DNA of 64,000 nucleotides, from positions 2,170,001 through 2,234,000 of the forward strand of contig MCFH01000001.1 of assembly GCA_002104945.1 (NCBI GenBank), in the 5' to 3' direction. A model generated the notes under the pieces. It did no database searches. It was given only the letters and a program-made list of their open reading frames with translations, and was not told where the DNA came from. The DNA comes from Piromyces finnis finn. Lineage: Eukaryota > Fungi > Neocallimastigomycota. Made by a program: the position numbers and the translations under genes. Shown here one piece after another: positions 5,349-57,623 of this stretch; the stretch's first letter is position 1; each line of letters begins with the position of its first letter.

Positions 5349-8300
5349 ATGAACAAGATAAACAGTAAAAAAAACAATACTGATGCTAAATACTTTCAAA
5401 GAGGTATATCATTATATTTATAAATATTTATGACTTAATATGTATAATATATCATTGGATGGATTGTTTTCAAAATATATTTATTGTGTAATTACTATGA
5501 ATAAAAATATAATATAAAAATTATAAATATCTACTATTTACCTTTATTTCAAAAATAAAATAAAATGAATGTGAATGACAATCACTATATATTATACTCA
5601 TTTCATTTCTTTAAATGTTTTTATCGAGGAATATTTTTTTCTAAAATTTTAAATAGTATAAATATAATAAATTTATGAACATTTCAATTTTTTTTATTTC
5701 AATTTTTCATTAAGATATGACAAAGAATATATAATTAAAAATAATAACAATAAATAAATAAAATAAAGAAAAAAAAAAATAAAAATTCAAAGTATAGAAA
5801 TTAAAAAAAATATATAATTATGTGAATATAATTATAATTAAATATAGGTAAAATTCAGGAATTAAAAGCTGAATTAAAGTCAGAGAAGAAAGATCCAAAA
5901 TTTGCAAGAAAGAAGAATGTTTTAAAGAAAATTGTTGCTAATATGACTATGGGAAATGACATGTCTCCACTTTTCTCAGATGTCTTAGTTTGTATGGATA
6001 TTCCAGTTTTGGAAATCAAAAAAATGGTTTATTTATATTTAATTCATTACGCAAGAAATAAGCCAGAAATGATTTTAATGGCTTTAAAGTCTTTCACCAA
6101 AGTAATATAAATAATGATTAAAAAGAATTAAATGATTATAAAATAAATAATATCAATAAAATCAATATATTACAATAAATTATAAATTAGCTACTATTAA
6201 TCTATTAATGTTTTTGTTTTTGTCTTTTTACAGGATGTTAATAGTAACAATCCATTAATTAGAGCTATGGCTATTAGAACTATGGGTTACATGCCAGCAG
6301 ACAAAATTATAAATTGTTTAGGAAAACCATTACATGACTGCTTACAAGATCGTGACCCTTATGTTAGAAAAACAGCAGCTCTTTGTGTTCCAAAACTTTT
6401 TATGGATGATCCAATCCTTGTCGAAAAAGAAGGATATTTAAATCAATTAAAAGATTTACTTAATGATACAAATTCTACTGTAAATATTTCAATAAAATTA
6501 ACTATATTGTTATGAAGTTCCTTTTCTAAAAAATATATATTTTATTAAAAATATATCAATAAATCATTATCACATTAATTTAGGTTGTCGCATCAGCTAT
6601 CTCCGGTTTAATTGAAATTGCTGATAGATCAGAAAAATTTGATTTGTCTATAAACTTTAATTTAGCAAACAAACTTTTAACTGCTATGAATGATTGTAAT
6701 GAGTATGTATATATTTATTATTTAAAAAAAAATGAATATTTTTTAAATTCCTAATTATATAAAAAATAATTAATGAAAAATAAATTTACTTCTCAAAAAT
6801 TAAAAAAAAAAAAAAAAAAAAATAAGATGGGGACAAACATACATTCTTGAAGCCATGATGTTCCATGTTCCACAAGAACATCAAGATGCTGAATTACTTG
6901 CAGAAAGAATCGTTCCAAGATTACAACATGCTAACGCTGCTGTTGTCTTAACTTCGGTTAAAGTTATTCTTTATTTAATGAATTATATGAATAATGAAGA
7001 AGTTGTTAACGGTTTATTTGCAAAACTTGCACCACCAATGGGTAAATATTAATAAATTATTGTTTATTCATAATAATAAAAGTAATTCGAATACTTATTC
7101 ATGGTCATTTAATTTTTTTGTTAAAAAAAAAAAAGTTACACTATTACACAGTGGTTATGAAATTCAATATGTTGCTTTAAGAAATATTTTATTAATTATT
7201 CAACGTAGACCGGATTTCTTAAAGAATGAACTTAAAGTTTTCTTCTGTAAATATAACGATCCAATTTATGTCAAATTAGCAAAATTAGAAATTATTATTC
7301 GTTTAACCACTATTTATAATGTCTCTCAAGTTCTCTCTGAATTAGAAGAGTAAGCTTAAAAGAATAAAAATAGTCATTATTATTAACTATGAAATAATTA
7401 ATCATAAATTGACGATTTATAAATTGACAATTTATTTTAAAAATAAAAAAAAAAAAAAAAAAAAAATAGATATTCTTCTGAAGTCGATGTTGGATTTGTT
7501 AGAAAGTCAGTTCGTTCTATTGGTAGATGCGCCATTAAAATTCCAGAAGCTACTGATGAATGTATCGATGTTTTAGTTAGATTAATTCATACTAAGGTTG
7601 ATTATGTTGTTCAAGAAGCTGTTGTAGTTATCAGAGTAAGTATAATGTAAAAATAAAAAAAAAGAAAAAATGTTTTAAAAAGAAAAAAATTAAGTTAATT
7701 AATAATAAAAACTATATTTATAATATTAGGATATTTTCAGAAAATATCCAAATAGATATGAAAGCACTATCGGAATTCTCTGTGAAAATTTGGATAGTTT
7801 AGATGAACCAGAAGCTAAAGCTTCCATGATTTGGATTATTGGACAATATTCTGACAGAATTCAAAATGCTGATGAATTATTAGATAATTTCTTAGAAACC
7901 TTCAAGGAAGAAACTACAGAAGTAAGAATGAATACTTTAATTTTTTAAAATACTATAAATTCTGTATTTATTTTAAAAATTTTTCTTATATATATTTTAT
8001 TATATAATAAAACCAATAATTTATTTGAAATGAATTTTAAAAATAAATAAGGTTCAACTTTCACTTCTTACAGCAATTGTAAAATTATTCATTAAAAGAC
8101 CAACTGTTGGTCAAGCCTTAGTCCCAAAGGTATTAAAATGGGCTACAGAAGATGTTGATAATCCAGATTTAAGAGATCGTGCTTACATTTACTGGAGATT
8201 ATTATCTAGTGATCCAGTAGCCGCCAAGGTATTTATATAAAAAAAAAAAATATTTTTTATTACATTTTAAAAAAATTAATTATATTATTTTTATCATTAT

Positions 8301-15607: not shown

Positions 15608-16333
15608 AAACACTCAATATATTATAATTATATTATATTATATTGATTTTAATACATTATTTAATAAATATATAAAATATATAAAAATATTATAAATTTA
15701 TAAATTTTATAAATTTTTCAATTCTATAAAAATGATAGAATTTTTTTAGAATATTAATGGCTAATAATAAATCTTGAATTTTTGCCAATCATAATACTCG
15801 AAATTGTTTATAAAAATTAAAAATATGTATATTGTGGCTTGTATATTGTTATATTTCAATAATTATTATAATTCTTATTAATTTTTTTTTTGCTTTACGG
15901 CTTAATAAATTTTAAATTTTAATAGTAATCTAATGCGCCATAAATACCTTTTTTTTAATTATTTTTAATTTTATTATTAATTAATTTAATACCATAACAA
16001 ATAATCTAACATAAAATATCATTTTCAATTATACTAATGAATACTTTTATAATTTAATTTAATTAAATATATAATTATATTAGAATAATAAAATATAAGG
16101 AAAATCTTTAAATATTCTTTTTTAAAGTCAAAAATATATATATATATATATATTAAAAAAAGTTGATAAAAAAGTAATACATTAAACATTAAAAAGATAT
16201 TTATATAAAACATTATTTAAAATAATAATTGAATAATTATAAAAAATAGATTTTTTTATTAACATTAAAATCTTTTAACAAATAAAATACATATATAATA
16301 AATATAATAAAAAAAAAAAAAAAAAAAAGAAAA

Positions 16334-18813
16334 ATGGAACAATTACACCAAAACTTTATAAGAAAAGCTGGGGAATTTGCTAGTCCACCAATGATAAATC
16401 GTTCTTCGTAAATATAAAATTATAATAAACTATTATACTATTATATAATACATTATACATTATACTCAAAAAAGAAAGATAAAATAGTTACCAAAGTAAA
16501 TTATAAAAATATAAAAAGAATAAAGTATTTGAAATTACTTTTAAAACTACAAGTACATTGAAAAAGTATATATATTAACATTAAATAAAAAAATCAAAGA
16601 TGAATTAACACTTGGATAATGAAAACTATTAACATGATATTTGATAATTTATAATTTATAAAAACTTTAAAACTTTAAAAAAAAAAATATTCATATACAT
16701 AAAATTTTCATACATTTAAAAAGGAATTAATCAAGTATTAATATATTATTTATATTCAATATTTCAATTTCACTTATCATAATATAGATCTAACGTCTTT
16801 GAACCAACTTCACCAGATAAGTTCTTTGATAAGGTTCAAGGATTAAAAATTGAAGGAACTGAAGATATATCCTTTTTTTTAATAATAAATTTTAATTTTT
16901 TTATTATATTTATTTTAATTTTATTTTATTTTATTTTATTGTCAAATGAGTTATTATAACATTGGAAATGATAATAATAAATAAATAAAATAAAATTAAT
17001 TGATAAAGTAATCATTAAATTCATGAAAAGATAGAATAAATAAAATACTGAAAAAAATAAGGAATTTACAATTCATTAAAAATTATAAACTAAATGTATC
17101 ATCCCTAACCTTAATTATTATCTTCATTTATTCAATATTGAATAAATACGTCTTTCAAGTTTATCAAATTAACCCAGAAGAAAAGAAAACTGTTTTTGTT
17201 TTCCATCATGGTGCTGGTCTTTCTGGACTTTCATACGCTTTATTAACTCAATATTTAAGAGAATTCAATAAAAACCAATGTGGAATTTTATGTTATGATT
17301 GCCGTGGACATGGTAAATATTATATTTACAAAAAATATAAAATACAATATTATCAAAATAATTTATTAAGTAATTTATTATAATTTATATTTATGTAAAA
17401 AATGAATTGTTGTTGTATTGTTTATTTTTTAATATTGCCCACCTCCATTATTACACACTAAAATATTTCTATAATGAAAAATAAAAAAAAACGTACATTA
17501 ATAATAAAAACAAAATAATAAATATTTATAAAAATAAAGGTCAAACTCACACTTCTAATGATGAAGATCTTTCTCTTGAAACTCTTAGTCAAGATTTAGT
17601 CAATATTTGTAATGCATTATACCCAGATCCAACAACCGAATTTGTTCTTGTTGGACACAGGTAATATAAACATTATCTATAAATTTAAAATATGTATTTT
17701 TTAATAAAATATAATTTATTTAATTCTAATATAAATTCTAAATTTTATAATAATAGTTTAGGTGGAGCTATTGTTTCAAATGTTGCAGCTAACCAAATGT
17801 TGAAAAAAATTTTTGGTTTAATTGTTATTGATGTTGTAGAAGGTACTGCTTTAGAATCTTTAGTTCATATGCAAAATGTTTTATTAAGTAGACCAACTTC
17901 CTTCAAAAGTGAAAAGGAAGCTATTGAATGGAGGTAAAAAAAAAAAAAAATAAATAAATAAATTATACTATTAAAATATTATTAATTATTTAATAATAAT
18001 ATCAATAATAATTTGTTAAAATATTACTATATTTCATTATAGTATTTTATCTCATACAATTAGAAATGTCGAATCTGCAAGAATTTCTGTTCCATCTCAA
18101 TTAGCAAAAATTGAAGGAAAGACAGGTGTTAAATACATTTGGAGAACCAATCTTTCTGCTTCTGAAAAGTATTGGGAAAGTAATGAGATGAAAACTACTA
18201 TTTTTTGTATTCTGAATATTTTTTTCTAATTTATATAAATAAATATTAATATATTAAATTAAATATTATTTTTATTATGTATAATGTATAATGATAGAAT
18301 GGTACCAAGGATTATCCGAAAAATTCCTTTCTGCTAGAGCTCCAAAATTATTATTCATTGCTAGTAAAGATATTTAAAATATGTTGTGTTAATAAATATT
18401 TAATTTATTTGCTTATTTTACTAAAATAAATCTCTATGTATATATAATTCATCGTGGTAATAATTGTAATTATAATTAGGTCCAGATAGATTAGATAAAC
18501 CATTAACTATTGGTCAAATGCAAGGTAATTATTCATAATCGACGTAGAATTATAATATATATAAAATAAAATAGTTCACCTATACATAAATGTAATTTGT
18601 TTAATTCTAAATTATGTATATATATATACTTAATTAGGTAAATTCCAAATGGAGATTTTCCCAGAATGTGGTCATTTAATGAATGAAGATGCACCAGATA
18701 AGCTTGCCTCTGTTTTAAATGACTTTTATAATCGTAATAAAGTTTTCATTCCAAAAAGATTTAATATTCCATTAAGACCAACCAACAGAGCTACTGCTCC
18801 AACAAGAAATTAA
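16334..18813 (+). CDS. PPE1: Protein phosphatase methylesterase 1 (PME-1), alpha/beta hydrolase, about 9 exons
   Basis: VFVFHHGAGLSGLS, DCRGHG, nucleophile elbow GHSLGG (assembled across an intron), IVIDVVEGTAL, SARISVPSQ, W.GLSEKFL, DRLDKPLTIGQMQGKFQM, CGHLMNEDAPDK. Intron 2 is AT-AC. Confidence 0.94.
16867..17149 (+). other. U12-type (minor spliceosome) AT-AC intron in PME-1
   Basis: 5' end ATATCCTTT at 16867 is the U12 donor consensus. Branch-like ATCCCTAACCTTAAT lies at 17101-17115 and the intron ends in AC at 17148-17149. Removing it gives in-frame GTED|VFQVY; no GT-AG pair preserves this segment. Confidence 0.88.
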
Positions 18814-19532
18814 AAAATTAAAAACTTTATCAATCCAATGTTTTTTATTTTAATATGCAATATACAATATACATATAATACATAAATAATTTAAAAAAAA
18901 AAAATAAAAAAATAAAAAATAATTTTGGTGTCCTTTAATTAATATAATAACGACATGAATATATAACCATAAAAAGAAAAGGGAACTTACATAGTAATAA
19001 ATAATTACGAATAATATATATCTTTTTTTTTTTTTTTTATTTTTTTTTTTTTTGTATACATTATTTCTGTACTAAATTAATTTCAAAAAGTTAAAAATTT
19101 GATAGTTTAAACAGATGTATTATAAATATTATATAATAGTATTTTCTTTTTTTTTTTCATTATTATTAAAACTATATATATTATATATGATTTTATGAAT
19201 AAATATAAATTAATTTATATTTTTATCTTATTTTGATATTGAATTGTTTTTTAATAAATTCATTTTTTATTTATTTTTTATTATTTGTTTATTTATTTGA
19301 GTGCTTTGATATGTTATATTCGTATTTGAATGTTTATATTTAATATTTATATTATTTGTTGAATATTTTTTGTTATATTCAAACATTTTTTTTTTTCTTT
19401 ATTTTTTAATATTATACTTTTATTAATTAAAAAAATATAAAAAAAATAAAATAAAATAAATGCATTGCGTTAATTTAATTGTTTTAATATTAATTAGATT
19501 TAATATTTTATATATTAATTATACTATATTCG

Positions 19533-22034
<2,502 letters not shown>

Positions 22035-25000
22035 TTTTTTATTTATTTTTTATTTTATTTAATTTTTAAATGAAGCTATATTTATAATGATAATTATTAA
22101 AAGTGTGAAATTAGAATTAAAATAGATTTTTTCTAATATGTAAAAACCAAAATAAATAATATTAAGAATTTATTTCTTATTTGATTATTATATTATAAAT
22201 TATTATAGTAATAAAAAAAGGGGGAATAATTTATATATTATCTCGATAAAAAAAAAAAAAAAAAAAAGAAAATTTCATTTTAATGTTAAAAATTTCAAAC
22301 TAATTTATCAATTTGAATTTTTTTAAACTTTTTTTTTAAAGTATATGTTATATACATAAATTGCATTAAATTATTAATAATTTATTATAACTAAATATTT
22401 TATACGTTCAATGCTATTTATTTCAAAAAAAAAGAAGAGAAAAAAACGACAATATTTATTACCATTTATTATTATTGCTAGTAAGGGTATTTAAAAGAAA
22501 TTAATAATCTCAAAATACTTGGGATTTTAAAAATATAAAATTGTTTTTTTTTAAGTATATACACTGAAAAAATTTACTGAAAATTTTACAAATCTCCGTC
22601 ATATATAAAATTAATAAAGATTATTAAATATTTATAAACTTACTTTAATAATTCTTATGATAATATTCTTTATTATTACTGTTTCTTGATTTTAATATTC
22701 TGTTGAACATTAACTAATCAATTTCTACTTTTTTAAATTTTGATAAATTTAATTGATTTTAAATAAAAAATTAAAATTTAATTTGAATTTCAAATTAATT
22801 ATTGATTTAAAGATATATTTATTAACCTTGGTTTTTTTATATAATATTTACATAAAATAAAAATAATGTGTTGATATTATTTATATATTATTTATACAAC
22901 ATATAAATTATTACTTTTCATTTAAAAATACTATGATAATAATGAAAAGAATAAGTTGAAAAAAAAAAATTCTTTTAATATTTTTATCATTGAAAAAAAA
23001 ATTTTTTTTTTTAGATATACATTTTAATTTTATAAAAAAATTTTTTTTTGAATAAATAAATTTTAATGATATAAAGTTTAAAAAAAGTAATTTAAGATTA
23101 CCACAATTTTTGTGTTAAAAAAATAAATTAAAAAAAATGAAAAAGATAAATAATAAAATATGAAAAAAAAAAAAAAAGATTAGTAATAATAAATATATAT
23201 TATTTATTTCAATTGGAATTTCTAAATTTTTTTTTTGTAATGCAATAAAATTATGTAGAGTTAATAATAGAAAAATTAGTATTTATATCATACTTTTTAT
23301 TCTATTTAAAACTAGGAATTATAACAGTAAAATTAAAATTTATTGAAGCTCATCGAAGTTTCTAACTATTAAATTTTTAACATCCTATTCTAACCTTTTA
23401 AGTTATTTTAATATTGTTCCAATATAAACAAATAATATTATAATTTATTATCCTTATTTTTTGTATATATATTACACCAATTAATATATTTTAATATATT
23501 AATAATATAACCTATTATAAGAACACTTAGTTTTAATTTATAGTAATAATAATATCAAGAGGTTCCCTTTCTTATTGCATTTAAATGTATATTATTAAAA
23601 ATTAAACAAAAATATAATAATAATAATAAGGATTACAAATTATGAAAATACATAATATGATGGTTATACCAATATTAATTAAATAATTTTCCATCTTTTT
23701 ACTTTGCTATATTATAAAATATAAAGAATATTGATAACCTTAAGGATATATATTGGGTATGATAAATTGAAGTTTTAAACCATATAAAAGTATAAAAGAT
23801 GCTGTATAGCTTTTAATTAATTATTAAAATTCAGAAATATGGAATTGTCGAATGTGGCTTGATTGTGTTGATTTCTCACATGTTGAACAATAAAATCTAT
23901 TTGTTCTTCCTTACATATATAATTTGAAATATAAAATAAAATTTTAATTTATAATATTCAAGATAAAAATTAATATGGTACATTATAAATATAGTAATCC
24001 ATTTGTATAGTTGTATAATAAATCTAAATATGTTTTTCTATTTAGATTTATTATTTATGATTGCCAATAAAAAAAATAGATATTAATTTAAAAAAAAAAT
24101 ATTAAATTGAAGAGGTCGTCTACAACTCTAAAATGTTTTTTCATAGAATATTGACTTAAGTGTATATATTAATTATGTTATTAGTTTGCTTAATTTATTA
24201 ATATAATAATAAAGTATCAATAATACAATTGTTACATTAATACGATGTTATTTATTATCATTAAATAGTATTATTATTTTATATATTAAATAATGTATAT
24301 ATATATATATACATATGCAAGTAATTTCCTAATAATTATTCTAAAAAAAAAAGAAAGAAATATAGTGTTTATAATGATAATTAATTGATCTTTTTGAAAT
24401 TCCTTTATATTCACATACTCATATATAATATTATATAATATCATAATATATTATTTTAACTTGCTTTTGTTTTTGTTTTTTTTGTTTTTGATCATGTATC
24501 AATCATTTTCCTTTCTTAAATTTATGGGATGCTTTAACATTAATATATTATTATATTATTATAATATATTATTTGTATTTAGTAATTTTTTTAAAATATT
24601 TTTTATACCGAAATATCAAATAATATAATATTAATTTTTATCATGTGTATATGTTTGGGAATTCTCTTTTTAATTCTAGTAAATAAAAAATTGGTTTATA
24701 TTTTTTATCATTATTATTTAAAGAAATTAAAATAACTTAAATAATTTAAATATCTCCTTATTAATAGAATAATTATAACATAATTACTATATATATTTAA
24801 AATTAAAGAAAATAAGTAATATGTTTTTTTTTATTAGGCATTATATAGCTAATAGGATTATAAATGATAGTTAAACTATTTATTTTTGCTAATTTTTTTT
24901 AATAAAAGGGTTTAATTTTGAGTTTTAAGTGGCAATTATATCCTATTATCCTACATTTCACCACGAAAAAAAATTATTTTCATTCTGTTAATCATTTATA

Positions 25001-25479: not shown

Positions 25480-27356
25480 ATGACTGACAACCATAATTTA
25501 AACGAAGTTTTAAGAGAATCTCACAAGCCAGCTTTAATTTTACCATACAGAGATGCTAATACTCAAAAAGCTGACCCAATTTACTTATACAGTACTGAAT
25601 TAATTGAAATTATTGATAAGCTTACTCAAGAAGCTCCATTAAAAAATTTAAAACCAAACGATAGAGTTGTTTTCCTTTTCCCAAACTCTGTTGAATTCAT
25701 TGCTGTTTTCTTTGCTATTTTAAAGGTTCAAGCTACTGCTTGTCCATTAAACCAAAATTACACAGTTGATGAACTTGACTTCTACTTAAATGATCTTTTA
25801 CCAAAAGCCGTTATAATCCCAAAAGGTGGCTCTCCAGCTTCTCGTGAAGCATGTAATAAATTAGGTATTCCACTTTATGAAATTGAAACTAAGTTTGTTG
25901 AAAAGGATGATATTGGTAGAATTCCAATGTTAACTTCTCATCCAGTTGAATTAGAAAATAAAACATTAGCTTCTTGGATTGCTGAAGATGCTCCAATTGC
26001 TTCTGAAAAGAATATTGCATTATTTTTACACACTTCTGGTACTACTGGAAGACCAAAAGGTAAATATAAAAATTTTATTTTTTTTTAAACATAAATAATT
26101 AAAATATAGTTAGTGAAAATAAATAGTTTTAAAAAAGTCATATTTCTTCTTATGAAATTGATAATGCATAACAAAATATAGATATATAATAAATAAAGAT
26201 AATAATTAATTGGAGTAATAGTTTATAAAAGCAAATAAATATAAATTTTTATATATTTTTTCTTTTTAAAAGTAAAGTTAATAACTAAAACATATTATAA
26301 TAAATAGGTGTTCCATTAACCCACCACAATATCTTTGTTACTTTAAAGAACATTAAGGATTCTTTCCAATTAACTGAAAAGGATACTTACCTTTTAGTTA
26401 TGCCACTCTTCCACGTACACGGTTTAATTGGTGTTCTTTTAACCACACTCTATGCTGGTGGTACAGTTGTTGTCCCACCAAAGTTCTCTGCCACTACTTT
26501 CTGGATGGATTTCGTTGAATTCGAAGCAACTTGTTATTCTGCTGTTCCAACTATTCATCAAATCTTATTATTAAAGAAGGAAGAAAACTACCCAGGAAAG
26601 GATAAGACTAGCAAATTAAGATTTATCAGAAGTTGCAGTTCAAGTTTAGCCCCAGCTACTCTTAAAGAATTAGAAGAATCTTTCAATGCTCCAGTTATTG
26701 AATCTTATGCTATGTCTGAAGCTGCTCATCAAATGACTTGTAACTTCTTACCACCAGGTATTCGTAAGGCTGGTTCTGTAGGTAAGGGAAGAGGTGTTGC
26801 TGTTGTTATTATGGATGATAATGGTAAGATCGTTGATAATGGTACTGTTGGTGAAGTTTGTGTTGCTGGTGAAAATGTTATTACTGAATATTACAATAAC
26901 CCAACTGCTACTGCTAACTCCTTCTGGGATGATCCAACTGGTACTTTACCAAATGGTATAAGATGGTTCAGAACTGGTGATTTAGGTTACAAAGATCCAG
27001 ATGAATTCATTTTCTTAACTGGTAGAATTAAGGAACAAATTAACCGTGGTGGTGAAAAAATTTCTCCAATTGAAATTGATCAATACATTCTTCAATTGGA
27101 TAATGTTGCTGAAGTATGTACTTTCCCAGTAAGTAGTGAAATTTATGGTCAAGAAATCGAATGTGCTGTTGTTGCTAAAGACGAATCTTTAACTGAACAA
27201 CAATTAACTGAACATTGTAAGGCTAAGTTAGCTTCCTTTAAGGTTCCAAAAAGATTCTGGATTGTTGAACAAATTCCAAAGACTGCTACTGGTAAGGTTC
27301 AACGTAGAATTGTTACTCAATACTTTGAAGAATTAGCTAAAAAAGAAGCTAAGTAA
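25480..27356 (+). CDS. PCS60: Oxalate--CoA ligase-like acyl-activating enzyme (AAE3/PCS60 family), 2 exons (intron 26060-26307)
   Basis: ALFLHTSGTTGRPK|GVPLTH, MPLFHVHGL, FSATTFW, SAVPTIHQI, LRFIRSCSSSLAP, ESYAMSEAAHQM, GSVGK, WFRTGDLG, GRIKEQINRGGEKISPIEID, FKVPKR, PKTATGKVQRRIV. These match the AAE3/PCS60 subfamily motifs as recalled. Confidence 0.85.
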
Positions 27357-54679: not shown

Positions 54680-57623
54680 CAATTAAGGCAAATTTAAATT
54701 ACAAAAATTTTATTATGTGAATAATAAACTTTTTATAACTAAATTTTTTAATTGTCATTATTACATTATTATACAATTATACAATACTTTATTATCTTTT
54801 TTTATTTTAATTTGTTTGAATATCATTAAAAAAAAAATATTTTAAATAAAAATGAAATTTAAACTTTTTTATATTTTTTTTTTTCAAATAGATAAAATGG
54901 TTTAACCTAATTTTATAATTTAATTATTTCTATATATGTATCATTGTAAAAAAAAGAAATTTTTGTAATTTTTTTAAAATATATTTCTTTATTCTAATAA
55001 ATTAAAATTACATGTAGTTTAAAAGTATGATGGAAAATGCATTTCATTAATAAAATTAAAAAAAAAAACAACCTTGTCTAATAAAATTTGAATAAAAAAT
55101 ATTTTTTACAATTTTAAATATTTCATTTATCTAACCCTTTAAAATTATTTAATCTAACCGATAAATTTATAAAGAAAAATTAATACCAAGAAAAAAAACA
55201 ATTTTATTTAAAATGTAACCCACATAATATTACATAAATATTACCATTATGAATAAAAAAGTAAATAAATAAATAAATAAATAAATAATTATAACTTTTT
55301 TTAAATAATTAATAGGAACTAATTAGTGAATCAGTCATTATAACCATTGAATTAAAAATTTTAAAACTTTTCCAATATAATAAAGAAAATACTATCTAAA
55401 TAAAAAAAAGAAAAGCCCTTTTTTTTATGATATTTTAAAACAAATTTAAATATTATTCATAATCTAACCACTAATATCAAATTAAAAAAAATAAGAATTT
55501 GTTATTAAATAAGATTAATAAATTTCCTCCTTTTTTTTGTGGACATGATACAAATGTTTTAGTAAAATAAAATATATTATTTTAATATATCATTTTCTAC
55601 TTTCTATATAAATTCAATAATTTTTAATAAAAAAAATATAAAAAGAGATATCGTCCGTACAAAGTATAATATTTAATAATAGAAGATAAAATTCTATTTA
55701 TAATTAATAGGATCTTTAGTAACTTTATTTGATTGGTCTATTTTTTGTTACATTATTTCTTTTATTGATTAATCAATAAAAATTTAATTATTACTTTAAA
55801 ACAGATCTTTCCCCAATTTAACAGTTTAAAAACAATGTAGAGGTATAGAAAATTTATTTTTTTTTATAATATATAAGTTTTTTAGTTTATATATTCTGTG
55901 ATAAAATAGTTTAATACTTGTATTACTAGTGTATTTTACTATTTACGTATTTTTTTCTTCTTTTTAATAATGATTTATATATGGTTGAACTTTTTTATTT
56001 TATTGTTATTAGAGTATTAATTAAATTTAAATATTAATATAATAAATAATATAAATTTTAATTTATCATTGTATATATTGTGTATATTTGCAATAATATA
56101 TTTTATAATATATTCAACTATATAAAATAAAATACAATTTATTAATTGTATAATATATTCAATATAATTATGTAATCAATTATTACATTTCAAATAATAT
56201 TTTTAATATACATTTATAATTAATGTACATTACATTTAAATGTAATATAATTATTATACTTTTTTAGAAATTCAACAACATACATTGTATTGGTATAAAC
56301 ATAAATAAGTAAATAAATAAAATTATTAATATATATTAATATATATTATTATATATTGAATAAAACAATAAATTATATTAAATAATAATATTTTTATGTG
56401 ATAATATTAATAAATAATATTAAATACTGATGAGATATATTAAAATAAAAGATAACCCTTTGAAATGTAAATTAATAGATTAATAATAAATTAAATAAAT
56501 TTTTAGAATGGAAATTATAATAATTATATATAATATATAAATGAATAAATCAACATTTAGATAAAATTTATAATTTTTACCACAATACTAAAATTTGATG
56601 GTAAAAAATTAAAAATTTATTATATTTTAACATTCATATGGTGAACTTATTGATATATTATAAATCATATTAAAAATAGTTATAATACCTAATAATTAAA
56701 AAAAGAAAATTAATCATTATATATAAAGATTAAGGTTTCCTATATTTCACTTTTTTATTCAAAAAAAAAAAAAAAAAAAAAGAAGTAAATAATAAACATA
56801 AACGAAAATAATTGATACAACTACTTATATAGTTATTGTTAACTATTTTTATATTATTATTCCAGAAGAAACAAACATTAATCATTAATACTATAATAAT
56901 AAAAACAATAACAATAAAGATAACAACATAACAATAATAATCAAAATTAGGGATATATAAAATATTAAAATTAGTATAAAGTATATTTTTTTAAAAAAAA
57001 AAAACTAAATATTTTTACTTTAAAAGATATATTGTAATAATAAAACGTGAAAAGTAAGTGAAGAATAAAAATAAAATAAGTAATATTTTTTTTATAATTA
57101 TATAATTATATTTTGGAATTATTTTGACAAACTAATTATATTTAATTTAATAAATTGAAAAAAAATTTTATAAAGATTAAGAAAATATTTAACATTAAGA
57201 GATAGAAATATTATAACTTAAGAAGCTTAAATTAATAATATTTAAACTAAAATAAGATGCAAAAATTTTATTAAAAGGTTTATTAAATAAATATTATTAC
57301 CAAAAGGTAAAAAAAAAAAAAAAAAAAGAAAAGAATAATATATTAAGTGTTTTAAATTCCTTTTTTATTTTTTTACTAATGGATAATATTTTTTTAATAA
57401 TATTTTTTTAATAATTCAATTATTATATAAGATAATAATTTATAATAAGCAACTACTTTTTTTTTTTTAAATAAAACCAATAAAGACAACCATATTTCAC
57501 ATAAATATAAATCAAAATTAAAATATCATATTTAAATACCTCAGTTAAAGCATTTTAATATATATAAAATAAATTTTAAAATATCCTTATCAAAAATTAA
57601 CATTTTTTTAATAAAAAGTAACA

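Follow-up and report, generated by a model that had tools for sequence, protein, structure and literature searches.

Positions 16867-17149 of the 64,000-nt stretch of Piromyces finnis DNA analysed here (the window) very probably form a genuine U12-type AT-AC intron, placed in phase 0 within the single-copy gene for PME-1 (protein phosphatase methylesterase 1); we put the probability of this reading at about 0.93. The intron lies on the forward strand between exons 2 and 3, is 283 nt long and has a G+C content of only 13%. We infer that it is removed by the minor spliceosome. The case for this assignment is built from spliced contigs that cross the junction, from the splice signals and their conservation in other fungal lineages, and from candidate minor spliceosome components elsewhere in the genome.

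The PME-1 gene and its spliced transcript

The PME-1 coding region extends from 16334 to 18813 on the forward strand and was resolved, from spliced contigs together with the sequence, into nine exons: 16334-16407, 16788-16866, 17150-17312, 17540-17660 and 17757-17933 (exons 1-5), followed by 18043-18179, 18298-18363, 18480-18524 and 18638-18813 (exons 6-9). The joined coding sequence measures 1038 nt, corresponding to 345 codons and a TAA stop. Exon 2 (79 nt) ends in ...KIEGTED, and exon 3 starts with VFQVYQINPEEKKTVFVFHHGAG and encodes the oxyanion-hole region of the alpha/beta hydrolase fold. The exon 4/5 junction splits the nucleophile elbow as GHS|LGG.

The identity of the gene was examined by searching either with single exons of the window or with the uninterrupted cDNA ORFs of relatives. 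With exon 5 as the sole query, human PME-1 (3C5W) was matched at an E value of 7.8e-12; exon 3 on its own, which is too short to score, found no match in the PDB at E 0.01. Used as the query in a metagenome scan, exon 3 retrieved three contigs from close relatives, L005-L007, which lack introns, show 85-87% identity and carry uninterrupted ORFs of 344-348 aa. Such relatives, together with the base composition of the window, accord with an anaerobic gut fungus as the host. The ORF of the first of these, L005, matches 3C5W at E 4.9e-81 (residues 31-326), and a protein search with it returned more than 1600 matches; among the 120 listed, those with names are mostly annotated 'protein phosphatase methylesterase 1'. 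The relatives' full-length cDNA ORFs are collinear with all nine exons of the P. finnis gene, with 72-96% identity exon by exon. Their contigs run continuously through the position of the exon 2/3 join, where they read ...KIEGTED(V/S)F(K/R)VYQINPEEKK..., and tblastn of the relatives' proteins on the window leaves no residue gap there (P0002, for instance, aligns over residues 26-52 and then over 52-106). Given this similarity over the full length of characterised PME-1, the GHSxGG elbow and the motifs VIDVVEGTA and QMQGKFQ included, the gene is, on the strength of homology, PME-1, and the AT-AC join as read against these relatives yields the conserved protein. The counterpart of the EGTED-VFQVY segment that the original prediction had expected the join to restore, EGTED-(V/S)F(K/R)VY, is uninterrupted in the relatives' cDNAs.

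In two of the relatives' contigs the PME-1 ORF is followed, on the same strand, by a second ORF that is unrelated to it (L006:1152-1694 and L007:1442-2521). The second ORF of L007 encodes a PAP2-like membrane protein with a tail of NER(F/M/I)D(N/T)R repeats. These two-ORF contigs may be read-through transcripts or chimeric transcript assemblies.

Contigs assembled from the sequencing runs were compared with positions 16200-18950 of the window. In each of three runs, X1, X2 and X3, which come from two studies, a single contig of 1.14-1.18 kb joins 16866 exactly to 17150 with 0 mismatches. The joint, recorded as 'skips 283, AT..AC', has no positional ambiguity, and all 79 nt of exon 2 lie on one side of it. 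The AT-AC termini are thus used in RNA, at precisely the junction that had been predicted, and the coordinates and letters given for the intron proved exact on re-reading. The other eight introns of the gene are likewise missing from the same contigs and all eight are GT..AG, again as anticipated; seven of these are listed as contig joints, and the eighth, 17934-18042, was deduced from contig pieces and sequence, a repeat having been skipped there. Within 16300-19300, 27-30% of sampled words are present in four public runs, which is about the exonic share. The runs are not recorded as RNA, and we take them to be so because the contigs lack all nine introns. This evidence consists of assembled contigs, from which the level of intron retention or of minor isoforms is not readable.

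Splice signals and conservation of the intron

The open frame ...AAA ATT GAA GGA ACT GAA GAT continues up to 16866, and ATATCCTTTTTTTT begins at 16867. At its 3' end the intron closes with ...GAATAAATAC (...AATAC) at 17149, and GTC TTT CAA GTT TAT resumes from 17150. The 5' splice site, ATATCCTTT (16867-16875, forward strand), conforms to the U12-type donor pattern /[AG]TATCCTT and is a perfect match to the consensus, bearing out the donor class assigned originally; a run of T residues follows it, to 16880. The best match to a branch site is ACCTTAAT at 17108-17115 on the same strand, which includes CCTTAAT at 17109-17115. Only the CCTTAA core of this element fits the branch consensus (TCCTTRAY), and its CCUUA is complementary to UAAGG within the segment GAGUAAGGAU of the U12 snRNA. 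The presumed branch adenosine is 17114, at a distance of 35 nt from the final base of the intron, compared with 16-24 nt in the orthologous introns described below; in animal U12 introns the branch site usually lies roughly 10-26 nt from the 3' end. Downstream of the branch motif, no other AC precedes that of the 3' splice site (17148-17149). RNAduplex preferred a long AT-rich pairing with U12 over 17114-17135, nearer the 3' end, that includes a 4-nt bulge; we regard this as a by-product of base composition and not as a canonical branch helix.

The G+C content of the window ranges from 13 to 32% per 2 kb, and the word RTATCCTT occurs in it five times, against 8.95 occurrences expected from shuffled sequence; the donor motif alone is therefore not above chance. 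The four other occurrences, at 57581-57588 on the forward strand and at 6430-6437, 23742-23749 and 26379-26386 on the reverse strand, have no open frame upstream and were set aside as chance matches. With one exception, they also have no branch-like word downstream. We judge the site at 16867 to be real because of its position and the RNA evidence, and not on account of the donor word alone.

For comparison with PME-1 orthologues, each public protein was mapped exactly onto its own DNA and the codon boundary before VF.VY, in phase 0, was compared. Three fungi hold an AT-AC intron at this boundary. In Rhizophagus irregularis (Glomeromycotina; L008:3367-3492) it runs from ATATCCTTTTAT through the branch box TCCTTGAC, 23 nt from the end, to AC. 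The intron of the chytrid Polychytrium aggregatum (Chytridiomycota; L018:2091-2221), with 57% G+C, has ATATCCTTTTAC, the same box TCCTTGAC at 24 nt, and AC. In Gigaspora margarita (Glomeromycotina; L016:2315-2428) a probable intron begins with ATATCCTTTTTTTT, carries TTCTTGAC at 16 nt and likewise ends in AC. The donor ATATCCTTTT is common to all three, and their branch boxes share the form T(C/T)CTTGAC. Beyond these signals, the introns of these fungi and of P. finnis, at 13-57% G+C, cannot be aligned with one another. That the donor and branch box have been kept while the rest of the intron has not is a mark of selection on the U12 signals.

Because the same position and phase hold an intron of the ATATCCTTTT...AC type in Glomeromycotina and in a chytrid, the PME-1 AT-AC intron is, on this comparative evidence, ancient and inherited, not new. 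No intron occupies the position in Powellomyces hirtus, Batrachochytrium dendrobatidis, a Mortierella, the basidiomycete Rickenella mellea, or the fungus Basidiobolus ranarum, whose whole PME-1 gene is intronless. The original prediction had proposed checking whether position and type are conserved in animals and plants. The position is indeed kept, with phase 0, in two angiosperms, Capsella rubella (L010) and Nymphaea thermarum (L017); the type is not, since both introns are GT-AG with GTAAAC or GTAAGT donors, and the one animal checked, the hemichordate Ptychodera flava, has no intron there. Either one ancient intron has changed its type in the angiosperms, or theirs was inserted independently.

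A tentative extension, to which we give rather lower odds than even, holds that a single, originally U12-type intron is older than the plant-fungus split, and that the minor spliceosome of gut fungi maybe tolerates the longer distance of 35 nt between branch site and 3' end. Under such a history the intron would have kept its AT-AC form in Neocallimastigomycota, the chytrid and Glomeromycotina, switched to the U2 type in the line leading to angiosperms, and been lost in Dikarya, in several zoosporic and zygomycete fungi and in at least one animal. Tolerance of the longer distance, if true, would imply relaxed or altered selection of the 3' site.

Several public gene models depart from the conserved protein at this position. 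The PME-1 model of Gigaspora margarita (GCA_009809945.1) avoids the AT-AC intron by means of a GT-AG pair and a 16-nt micro-exon, with part of the intron translated ('DGSNYENYEILDQILVY'). The true junction in this species appears, from its DNA, to be ...PDSEN|IFRVYD..., made through ATATCCTTTT...TTCTTGAC...AC. Four further public PME-1 sequences, from Rhizophagus diaphanus (P0017), Dentiscutata (P0034), Ambispora (P0014) and Diversispora (P0029), are likewise aberrant or cut short in their N-terminal part at the intron site.

Minor spliceosome candidates and alternative readings

Searches of the whole assembly for the minor snRNAs, scored against Rfam cut-offs, returned one candidate for each of the four that the original prediction had called for. 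U12, whose branch-site-binding segment is GAGUAAGGAU, scores 66.6 bits (cut-off 53), and the single-copy U6atac (L003:1501-1649, corresponding to G000:C112:211500-211648, forward strand) scores 52.1 bits (cut-off 33). The other two fall just below their thresholds: a U11 candidate (L002:1500-1615, G000:C152:317514-317628, forward strand) at 38.2 bits against 39, and a U4atac candidate (L004:1501-1639) at 49.2 bits against 53. The U11 candidate has the near-invariant stem-loop III, GUGCGGAAUCGAUAUCAAGAGAUUUCG, and an Sm site, AAUUUUUG. The 5' end of U4atac, CGUCCUUAUCU, forms a perfect 11-bp stem II with AGAUAAGGACG of U6atac, in which one pair is G-C and not the A-U implied by the Rfam consensus (a compensatory change), and in stem I GGGAU pairs with AUCCC. 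Some 550 nt downstream of the U11 candidate there is a SNORD14-like C/D box snoRNA (L002:2162-2325, reverse strand), whose 52 bits fall below the cut-off of 64.

Two of these RNAs depart from consensus. The 5'-splice-site box of U6atac is GCCGA in place of AAGGA, with GGC where the consensus has AGC. A '[GU]CCGA CC variant' of U6atac has been described in cnidarians, Trichoplax, Acanthamoeba, Physarum, Physcomitrella and oomycetes (Davila Lopez 2008; PMC2396436). Readings of the GCCGA sequence as a pseudogene or as a novelty were ruled out by its single copy, its perfect pairing with U4atac and this published variant. The U11 candidate begins with AAAGAAAAGU, where the consensus is AAAAAGGGC. 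In the PME-1 intron, C6 and the T run after ATATCC offer a pairing partner for this 5' end (9 bp, including one G-U, at -5.6 kcal/mol), which may represent a co-adaptation to the AT-rich extension of the donor.

Among the proteins, CENATAC serves the splicing of minor introns of the AT-AN class. The genome holds a CENATAC/CCDC84 homologue (PF14968) at G000:C112:739085-740745 on the reverse strand (loci L020 and L021), found as three collinear exon matches above cut-off. There is also one zf-U11-48K match, which is ambiguous since TRM13-type proteins could give the same result, and an uninformative profile search of the genome for PDCD7 (PF16021) gave no match.

With these components, the U11/U12 di-snRNP would recognise the ATATCCTTT donor and the CCTTAA-type branch site; U4atac/U6atac.U5 would then join, and the intron would be excised with ...EGTED joined to VFQVY.... 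By reading of the frame, a retained intron would end translation 31 codons into its own sequence, ahead of the hydrolase domain, so that functional PME-1 needs this splice. Its production would therefore depend on the minor spliceosome, in support of the earlier suggestion that a PP2A regulator relies on this machinery.

The major spliceosome might instead remove the intron despite its terminal dinucleotides, as a U2-type AT-AC intron. Rare U2-dependent AT-AC introns do exist, and the branch motif of the PME-1 intron is imperfect and unusually placed, at 35 nt from the 3' end. The donor, however, is the full U12 consensus and not an ATAAGT-like U2 donor, and the ATATCCTTTT donor and T(C/T)CTTGAC box persist in three other fungal lineages in introns that are otherwise unalignable and range from 13% to 57% G+C, a pattern that argues against U2-type recognition. 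The genome, moreover, contains CENATAC and a candidate for each of the four minor snRNAs, and we consider removal by the major spliceosome very unlikely. Still less probable is that the junction itself is an artefact, with the contigs stemming from contaminating DNA, a retrocopy or faulty assembly, and the genuine mRNA spliced at a GT-AG pair instead. Such an account gains some room from the RNA status of the runs, which is a guess, and from eight stop-free in-frame GT/GC-AG alternatives that can be drawn on paper. Yet every one of these alternatives would remove conserved residues or else add 30-60 AT-rich residues found in none of the homologues, and all are incompatible with the RNA contigs. 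The identical joint in three runs and two studies, free of mismatches and in contigs from which all nine introns are gone, also speaks against an artefact, as do the relatives' independent cDNA contigs, which give the same protein over the junction. A retrocopy is excluded as the source because the 56.5-Mb assembly contains a single copy of exon 3. We therefore retain the reading of 16867-17149 as a U12-type intron.

Comparison with known minor introns

Minor introns and minor snRNAs have already been reported in Neocallimastigomycetes, with Piromyces finnis mentioned by name (Larue & Roy 2023; PMC10639083). The novelty that the original prediction implied for minor splicing in this organism consequently falls away, and the PME-1 intron leaves the known distribution of the minor spliceosome unchanged. 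What is new is the conservation of one intron over three deep fungal lineages, the U2-type intron at the same position in angiosperms, the moderately long branch distance, and the explanation that the intron provides for an error in one or more public gene models. Our literature search on PPME1 and minor introns found no paper on the PME-1 intron or its conservation. The intron is a transcript-verified addition to the small set of individually documented minor introns in anaerobic gut fungi, and it offers a usable marker for minor-intron retention, loss and possible U12-to-U2 conversion.

Classical AT-AC U12 introns of animals and plants share with the PME-1 intron the terminal dinucleotides, the donor consensus and the lack of a strong polypyrimidine tract. 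As in P. finnis PME-1, they also stand alone among the many GT-AG introns of their gene, which has a housekeeping or regulatory role. The P. finnis system differs from these classical ones in its extremely AT-rich genome, which is mirrored in the composition of the intron, in the CC variant of its U6atac (GCCGA for AAGGA; PMC2396436), and in the 5' end of its U11, which is AAAGAAAAGU and not AAAAAGGGC. The gene of Ptychodera flava, in contrast to that of P. finnis, is uninterrupted at this position. The angiosperm PME-1 intron, seen in Capsella rubella and Nymphaea thermarum, agrees with the fungal one exactly in position and phase, falling between ...(D/T)D and VFHVY; unlike it, the angiosperm intron combines its GTAAAC or GTAAGT donors with AG acceptors and bears no U12 signals.

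The PME-1 intron also closely resembles the U12 AT-AC introns described in early-diverging fungi, represented by Rhizophagus irregularis, Neocallimastigomycetes and Spizellomyces (PMC10639083), with which it shares the ATATCCTT donor, the AC acceptor and a putative CCTTRA-type branch box. The likeness extends to the machinery, in that the P. finnis genome, like those systems, has candidates for all four minor snRNAs. In R. irregularis it extends to the gene itself, since PME-1 is interrupted there by the orthologous intron between the same two codons; what sets the P. finnis intron apart from its fungal orthologues is the greater distance between the presumed branch site and the 3' splice site.
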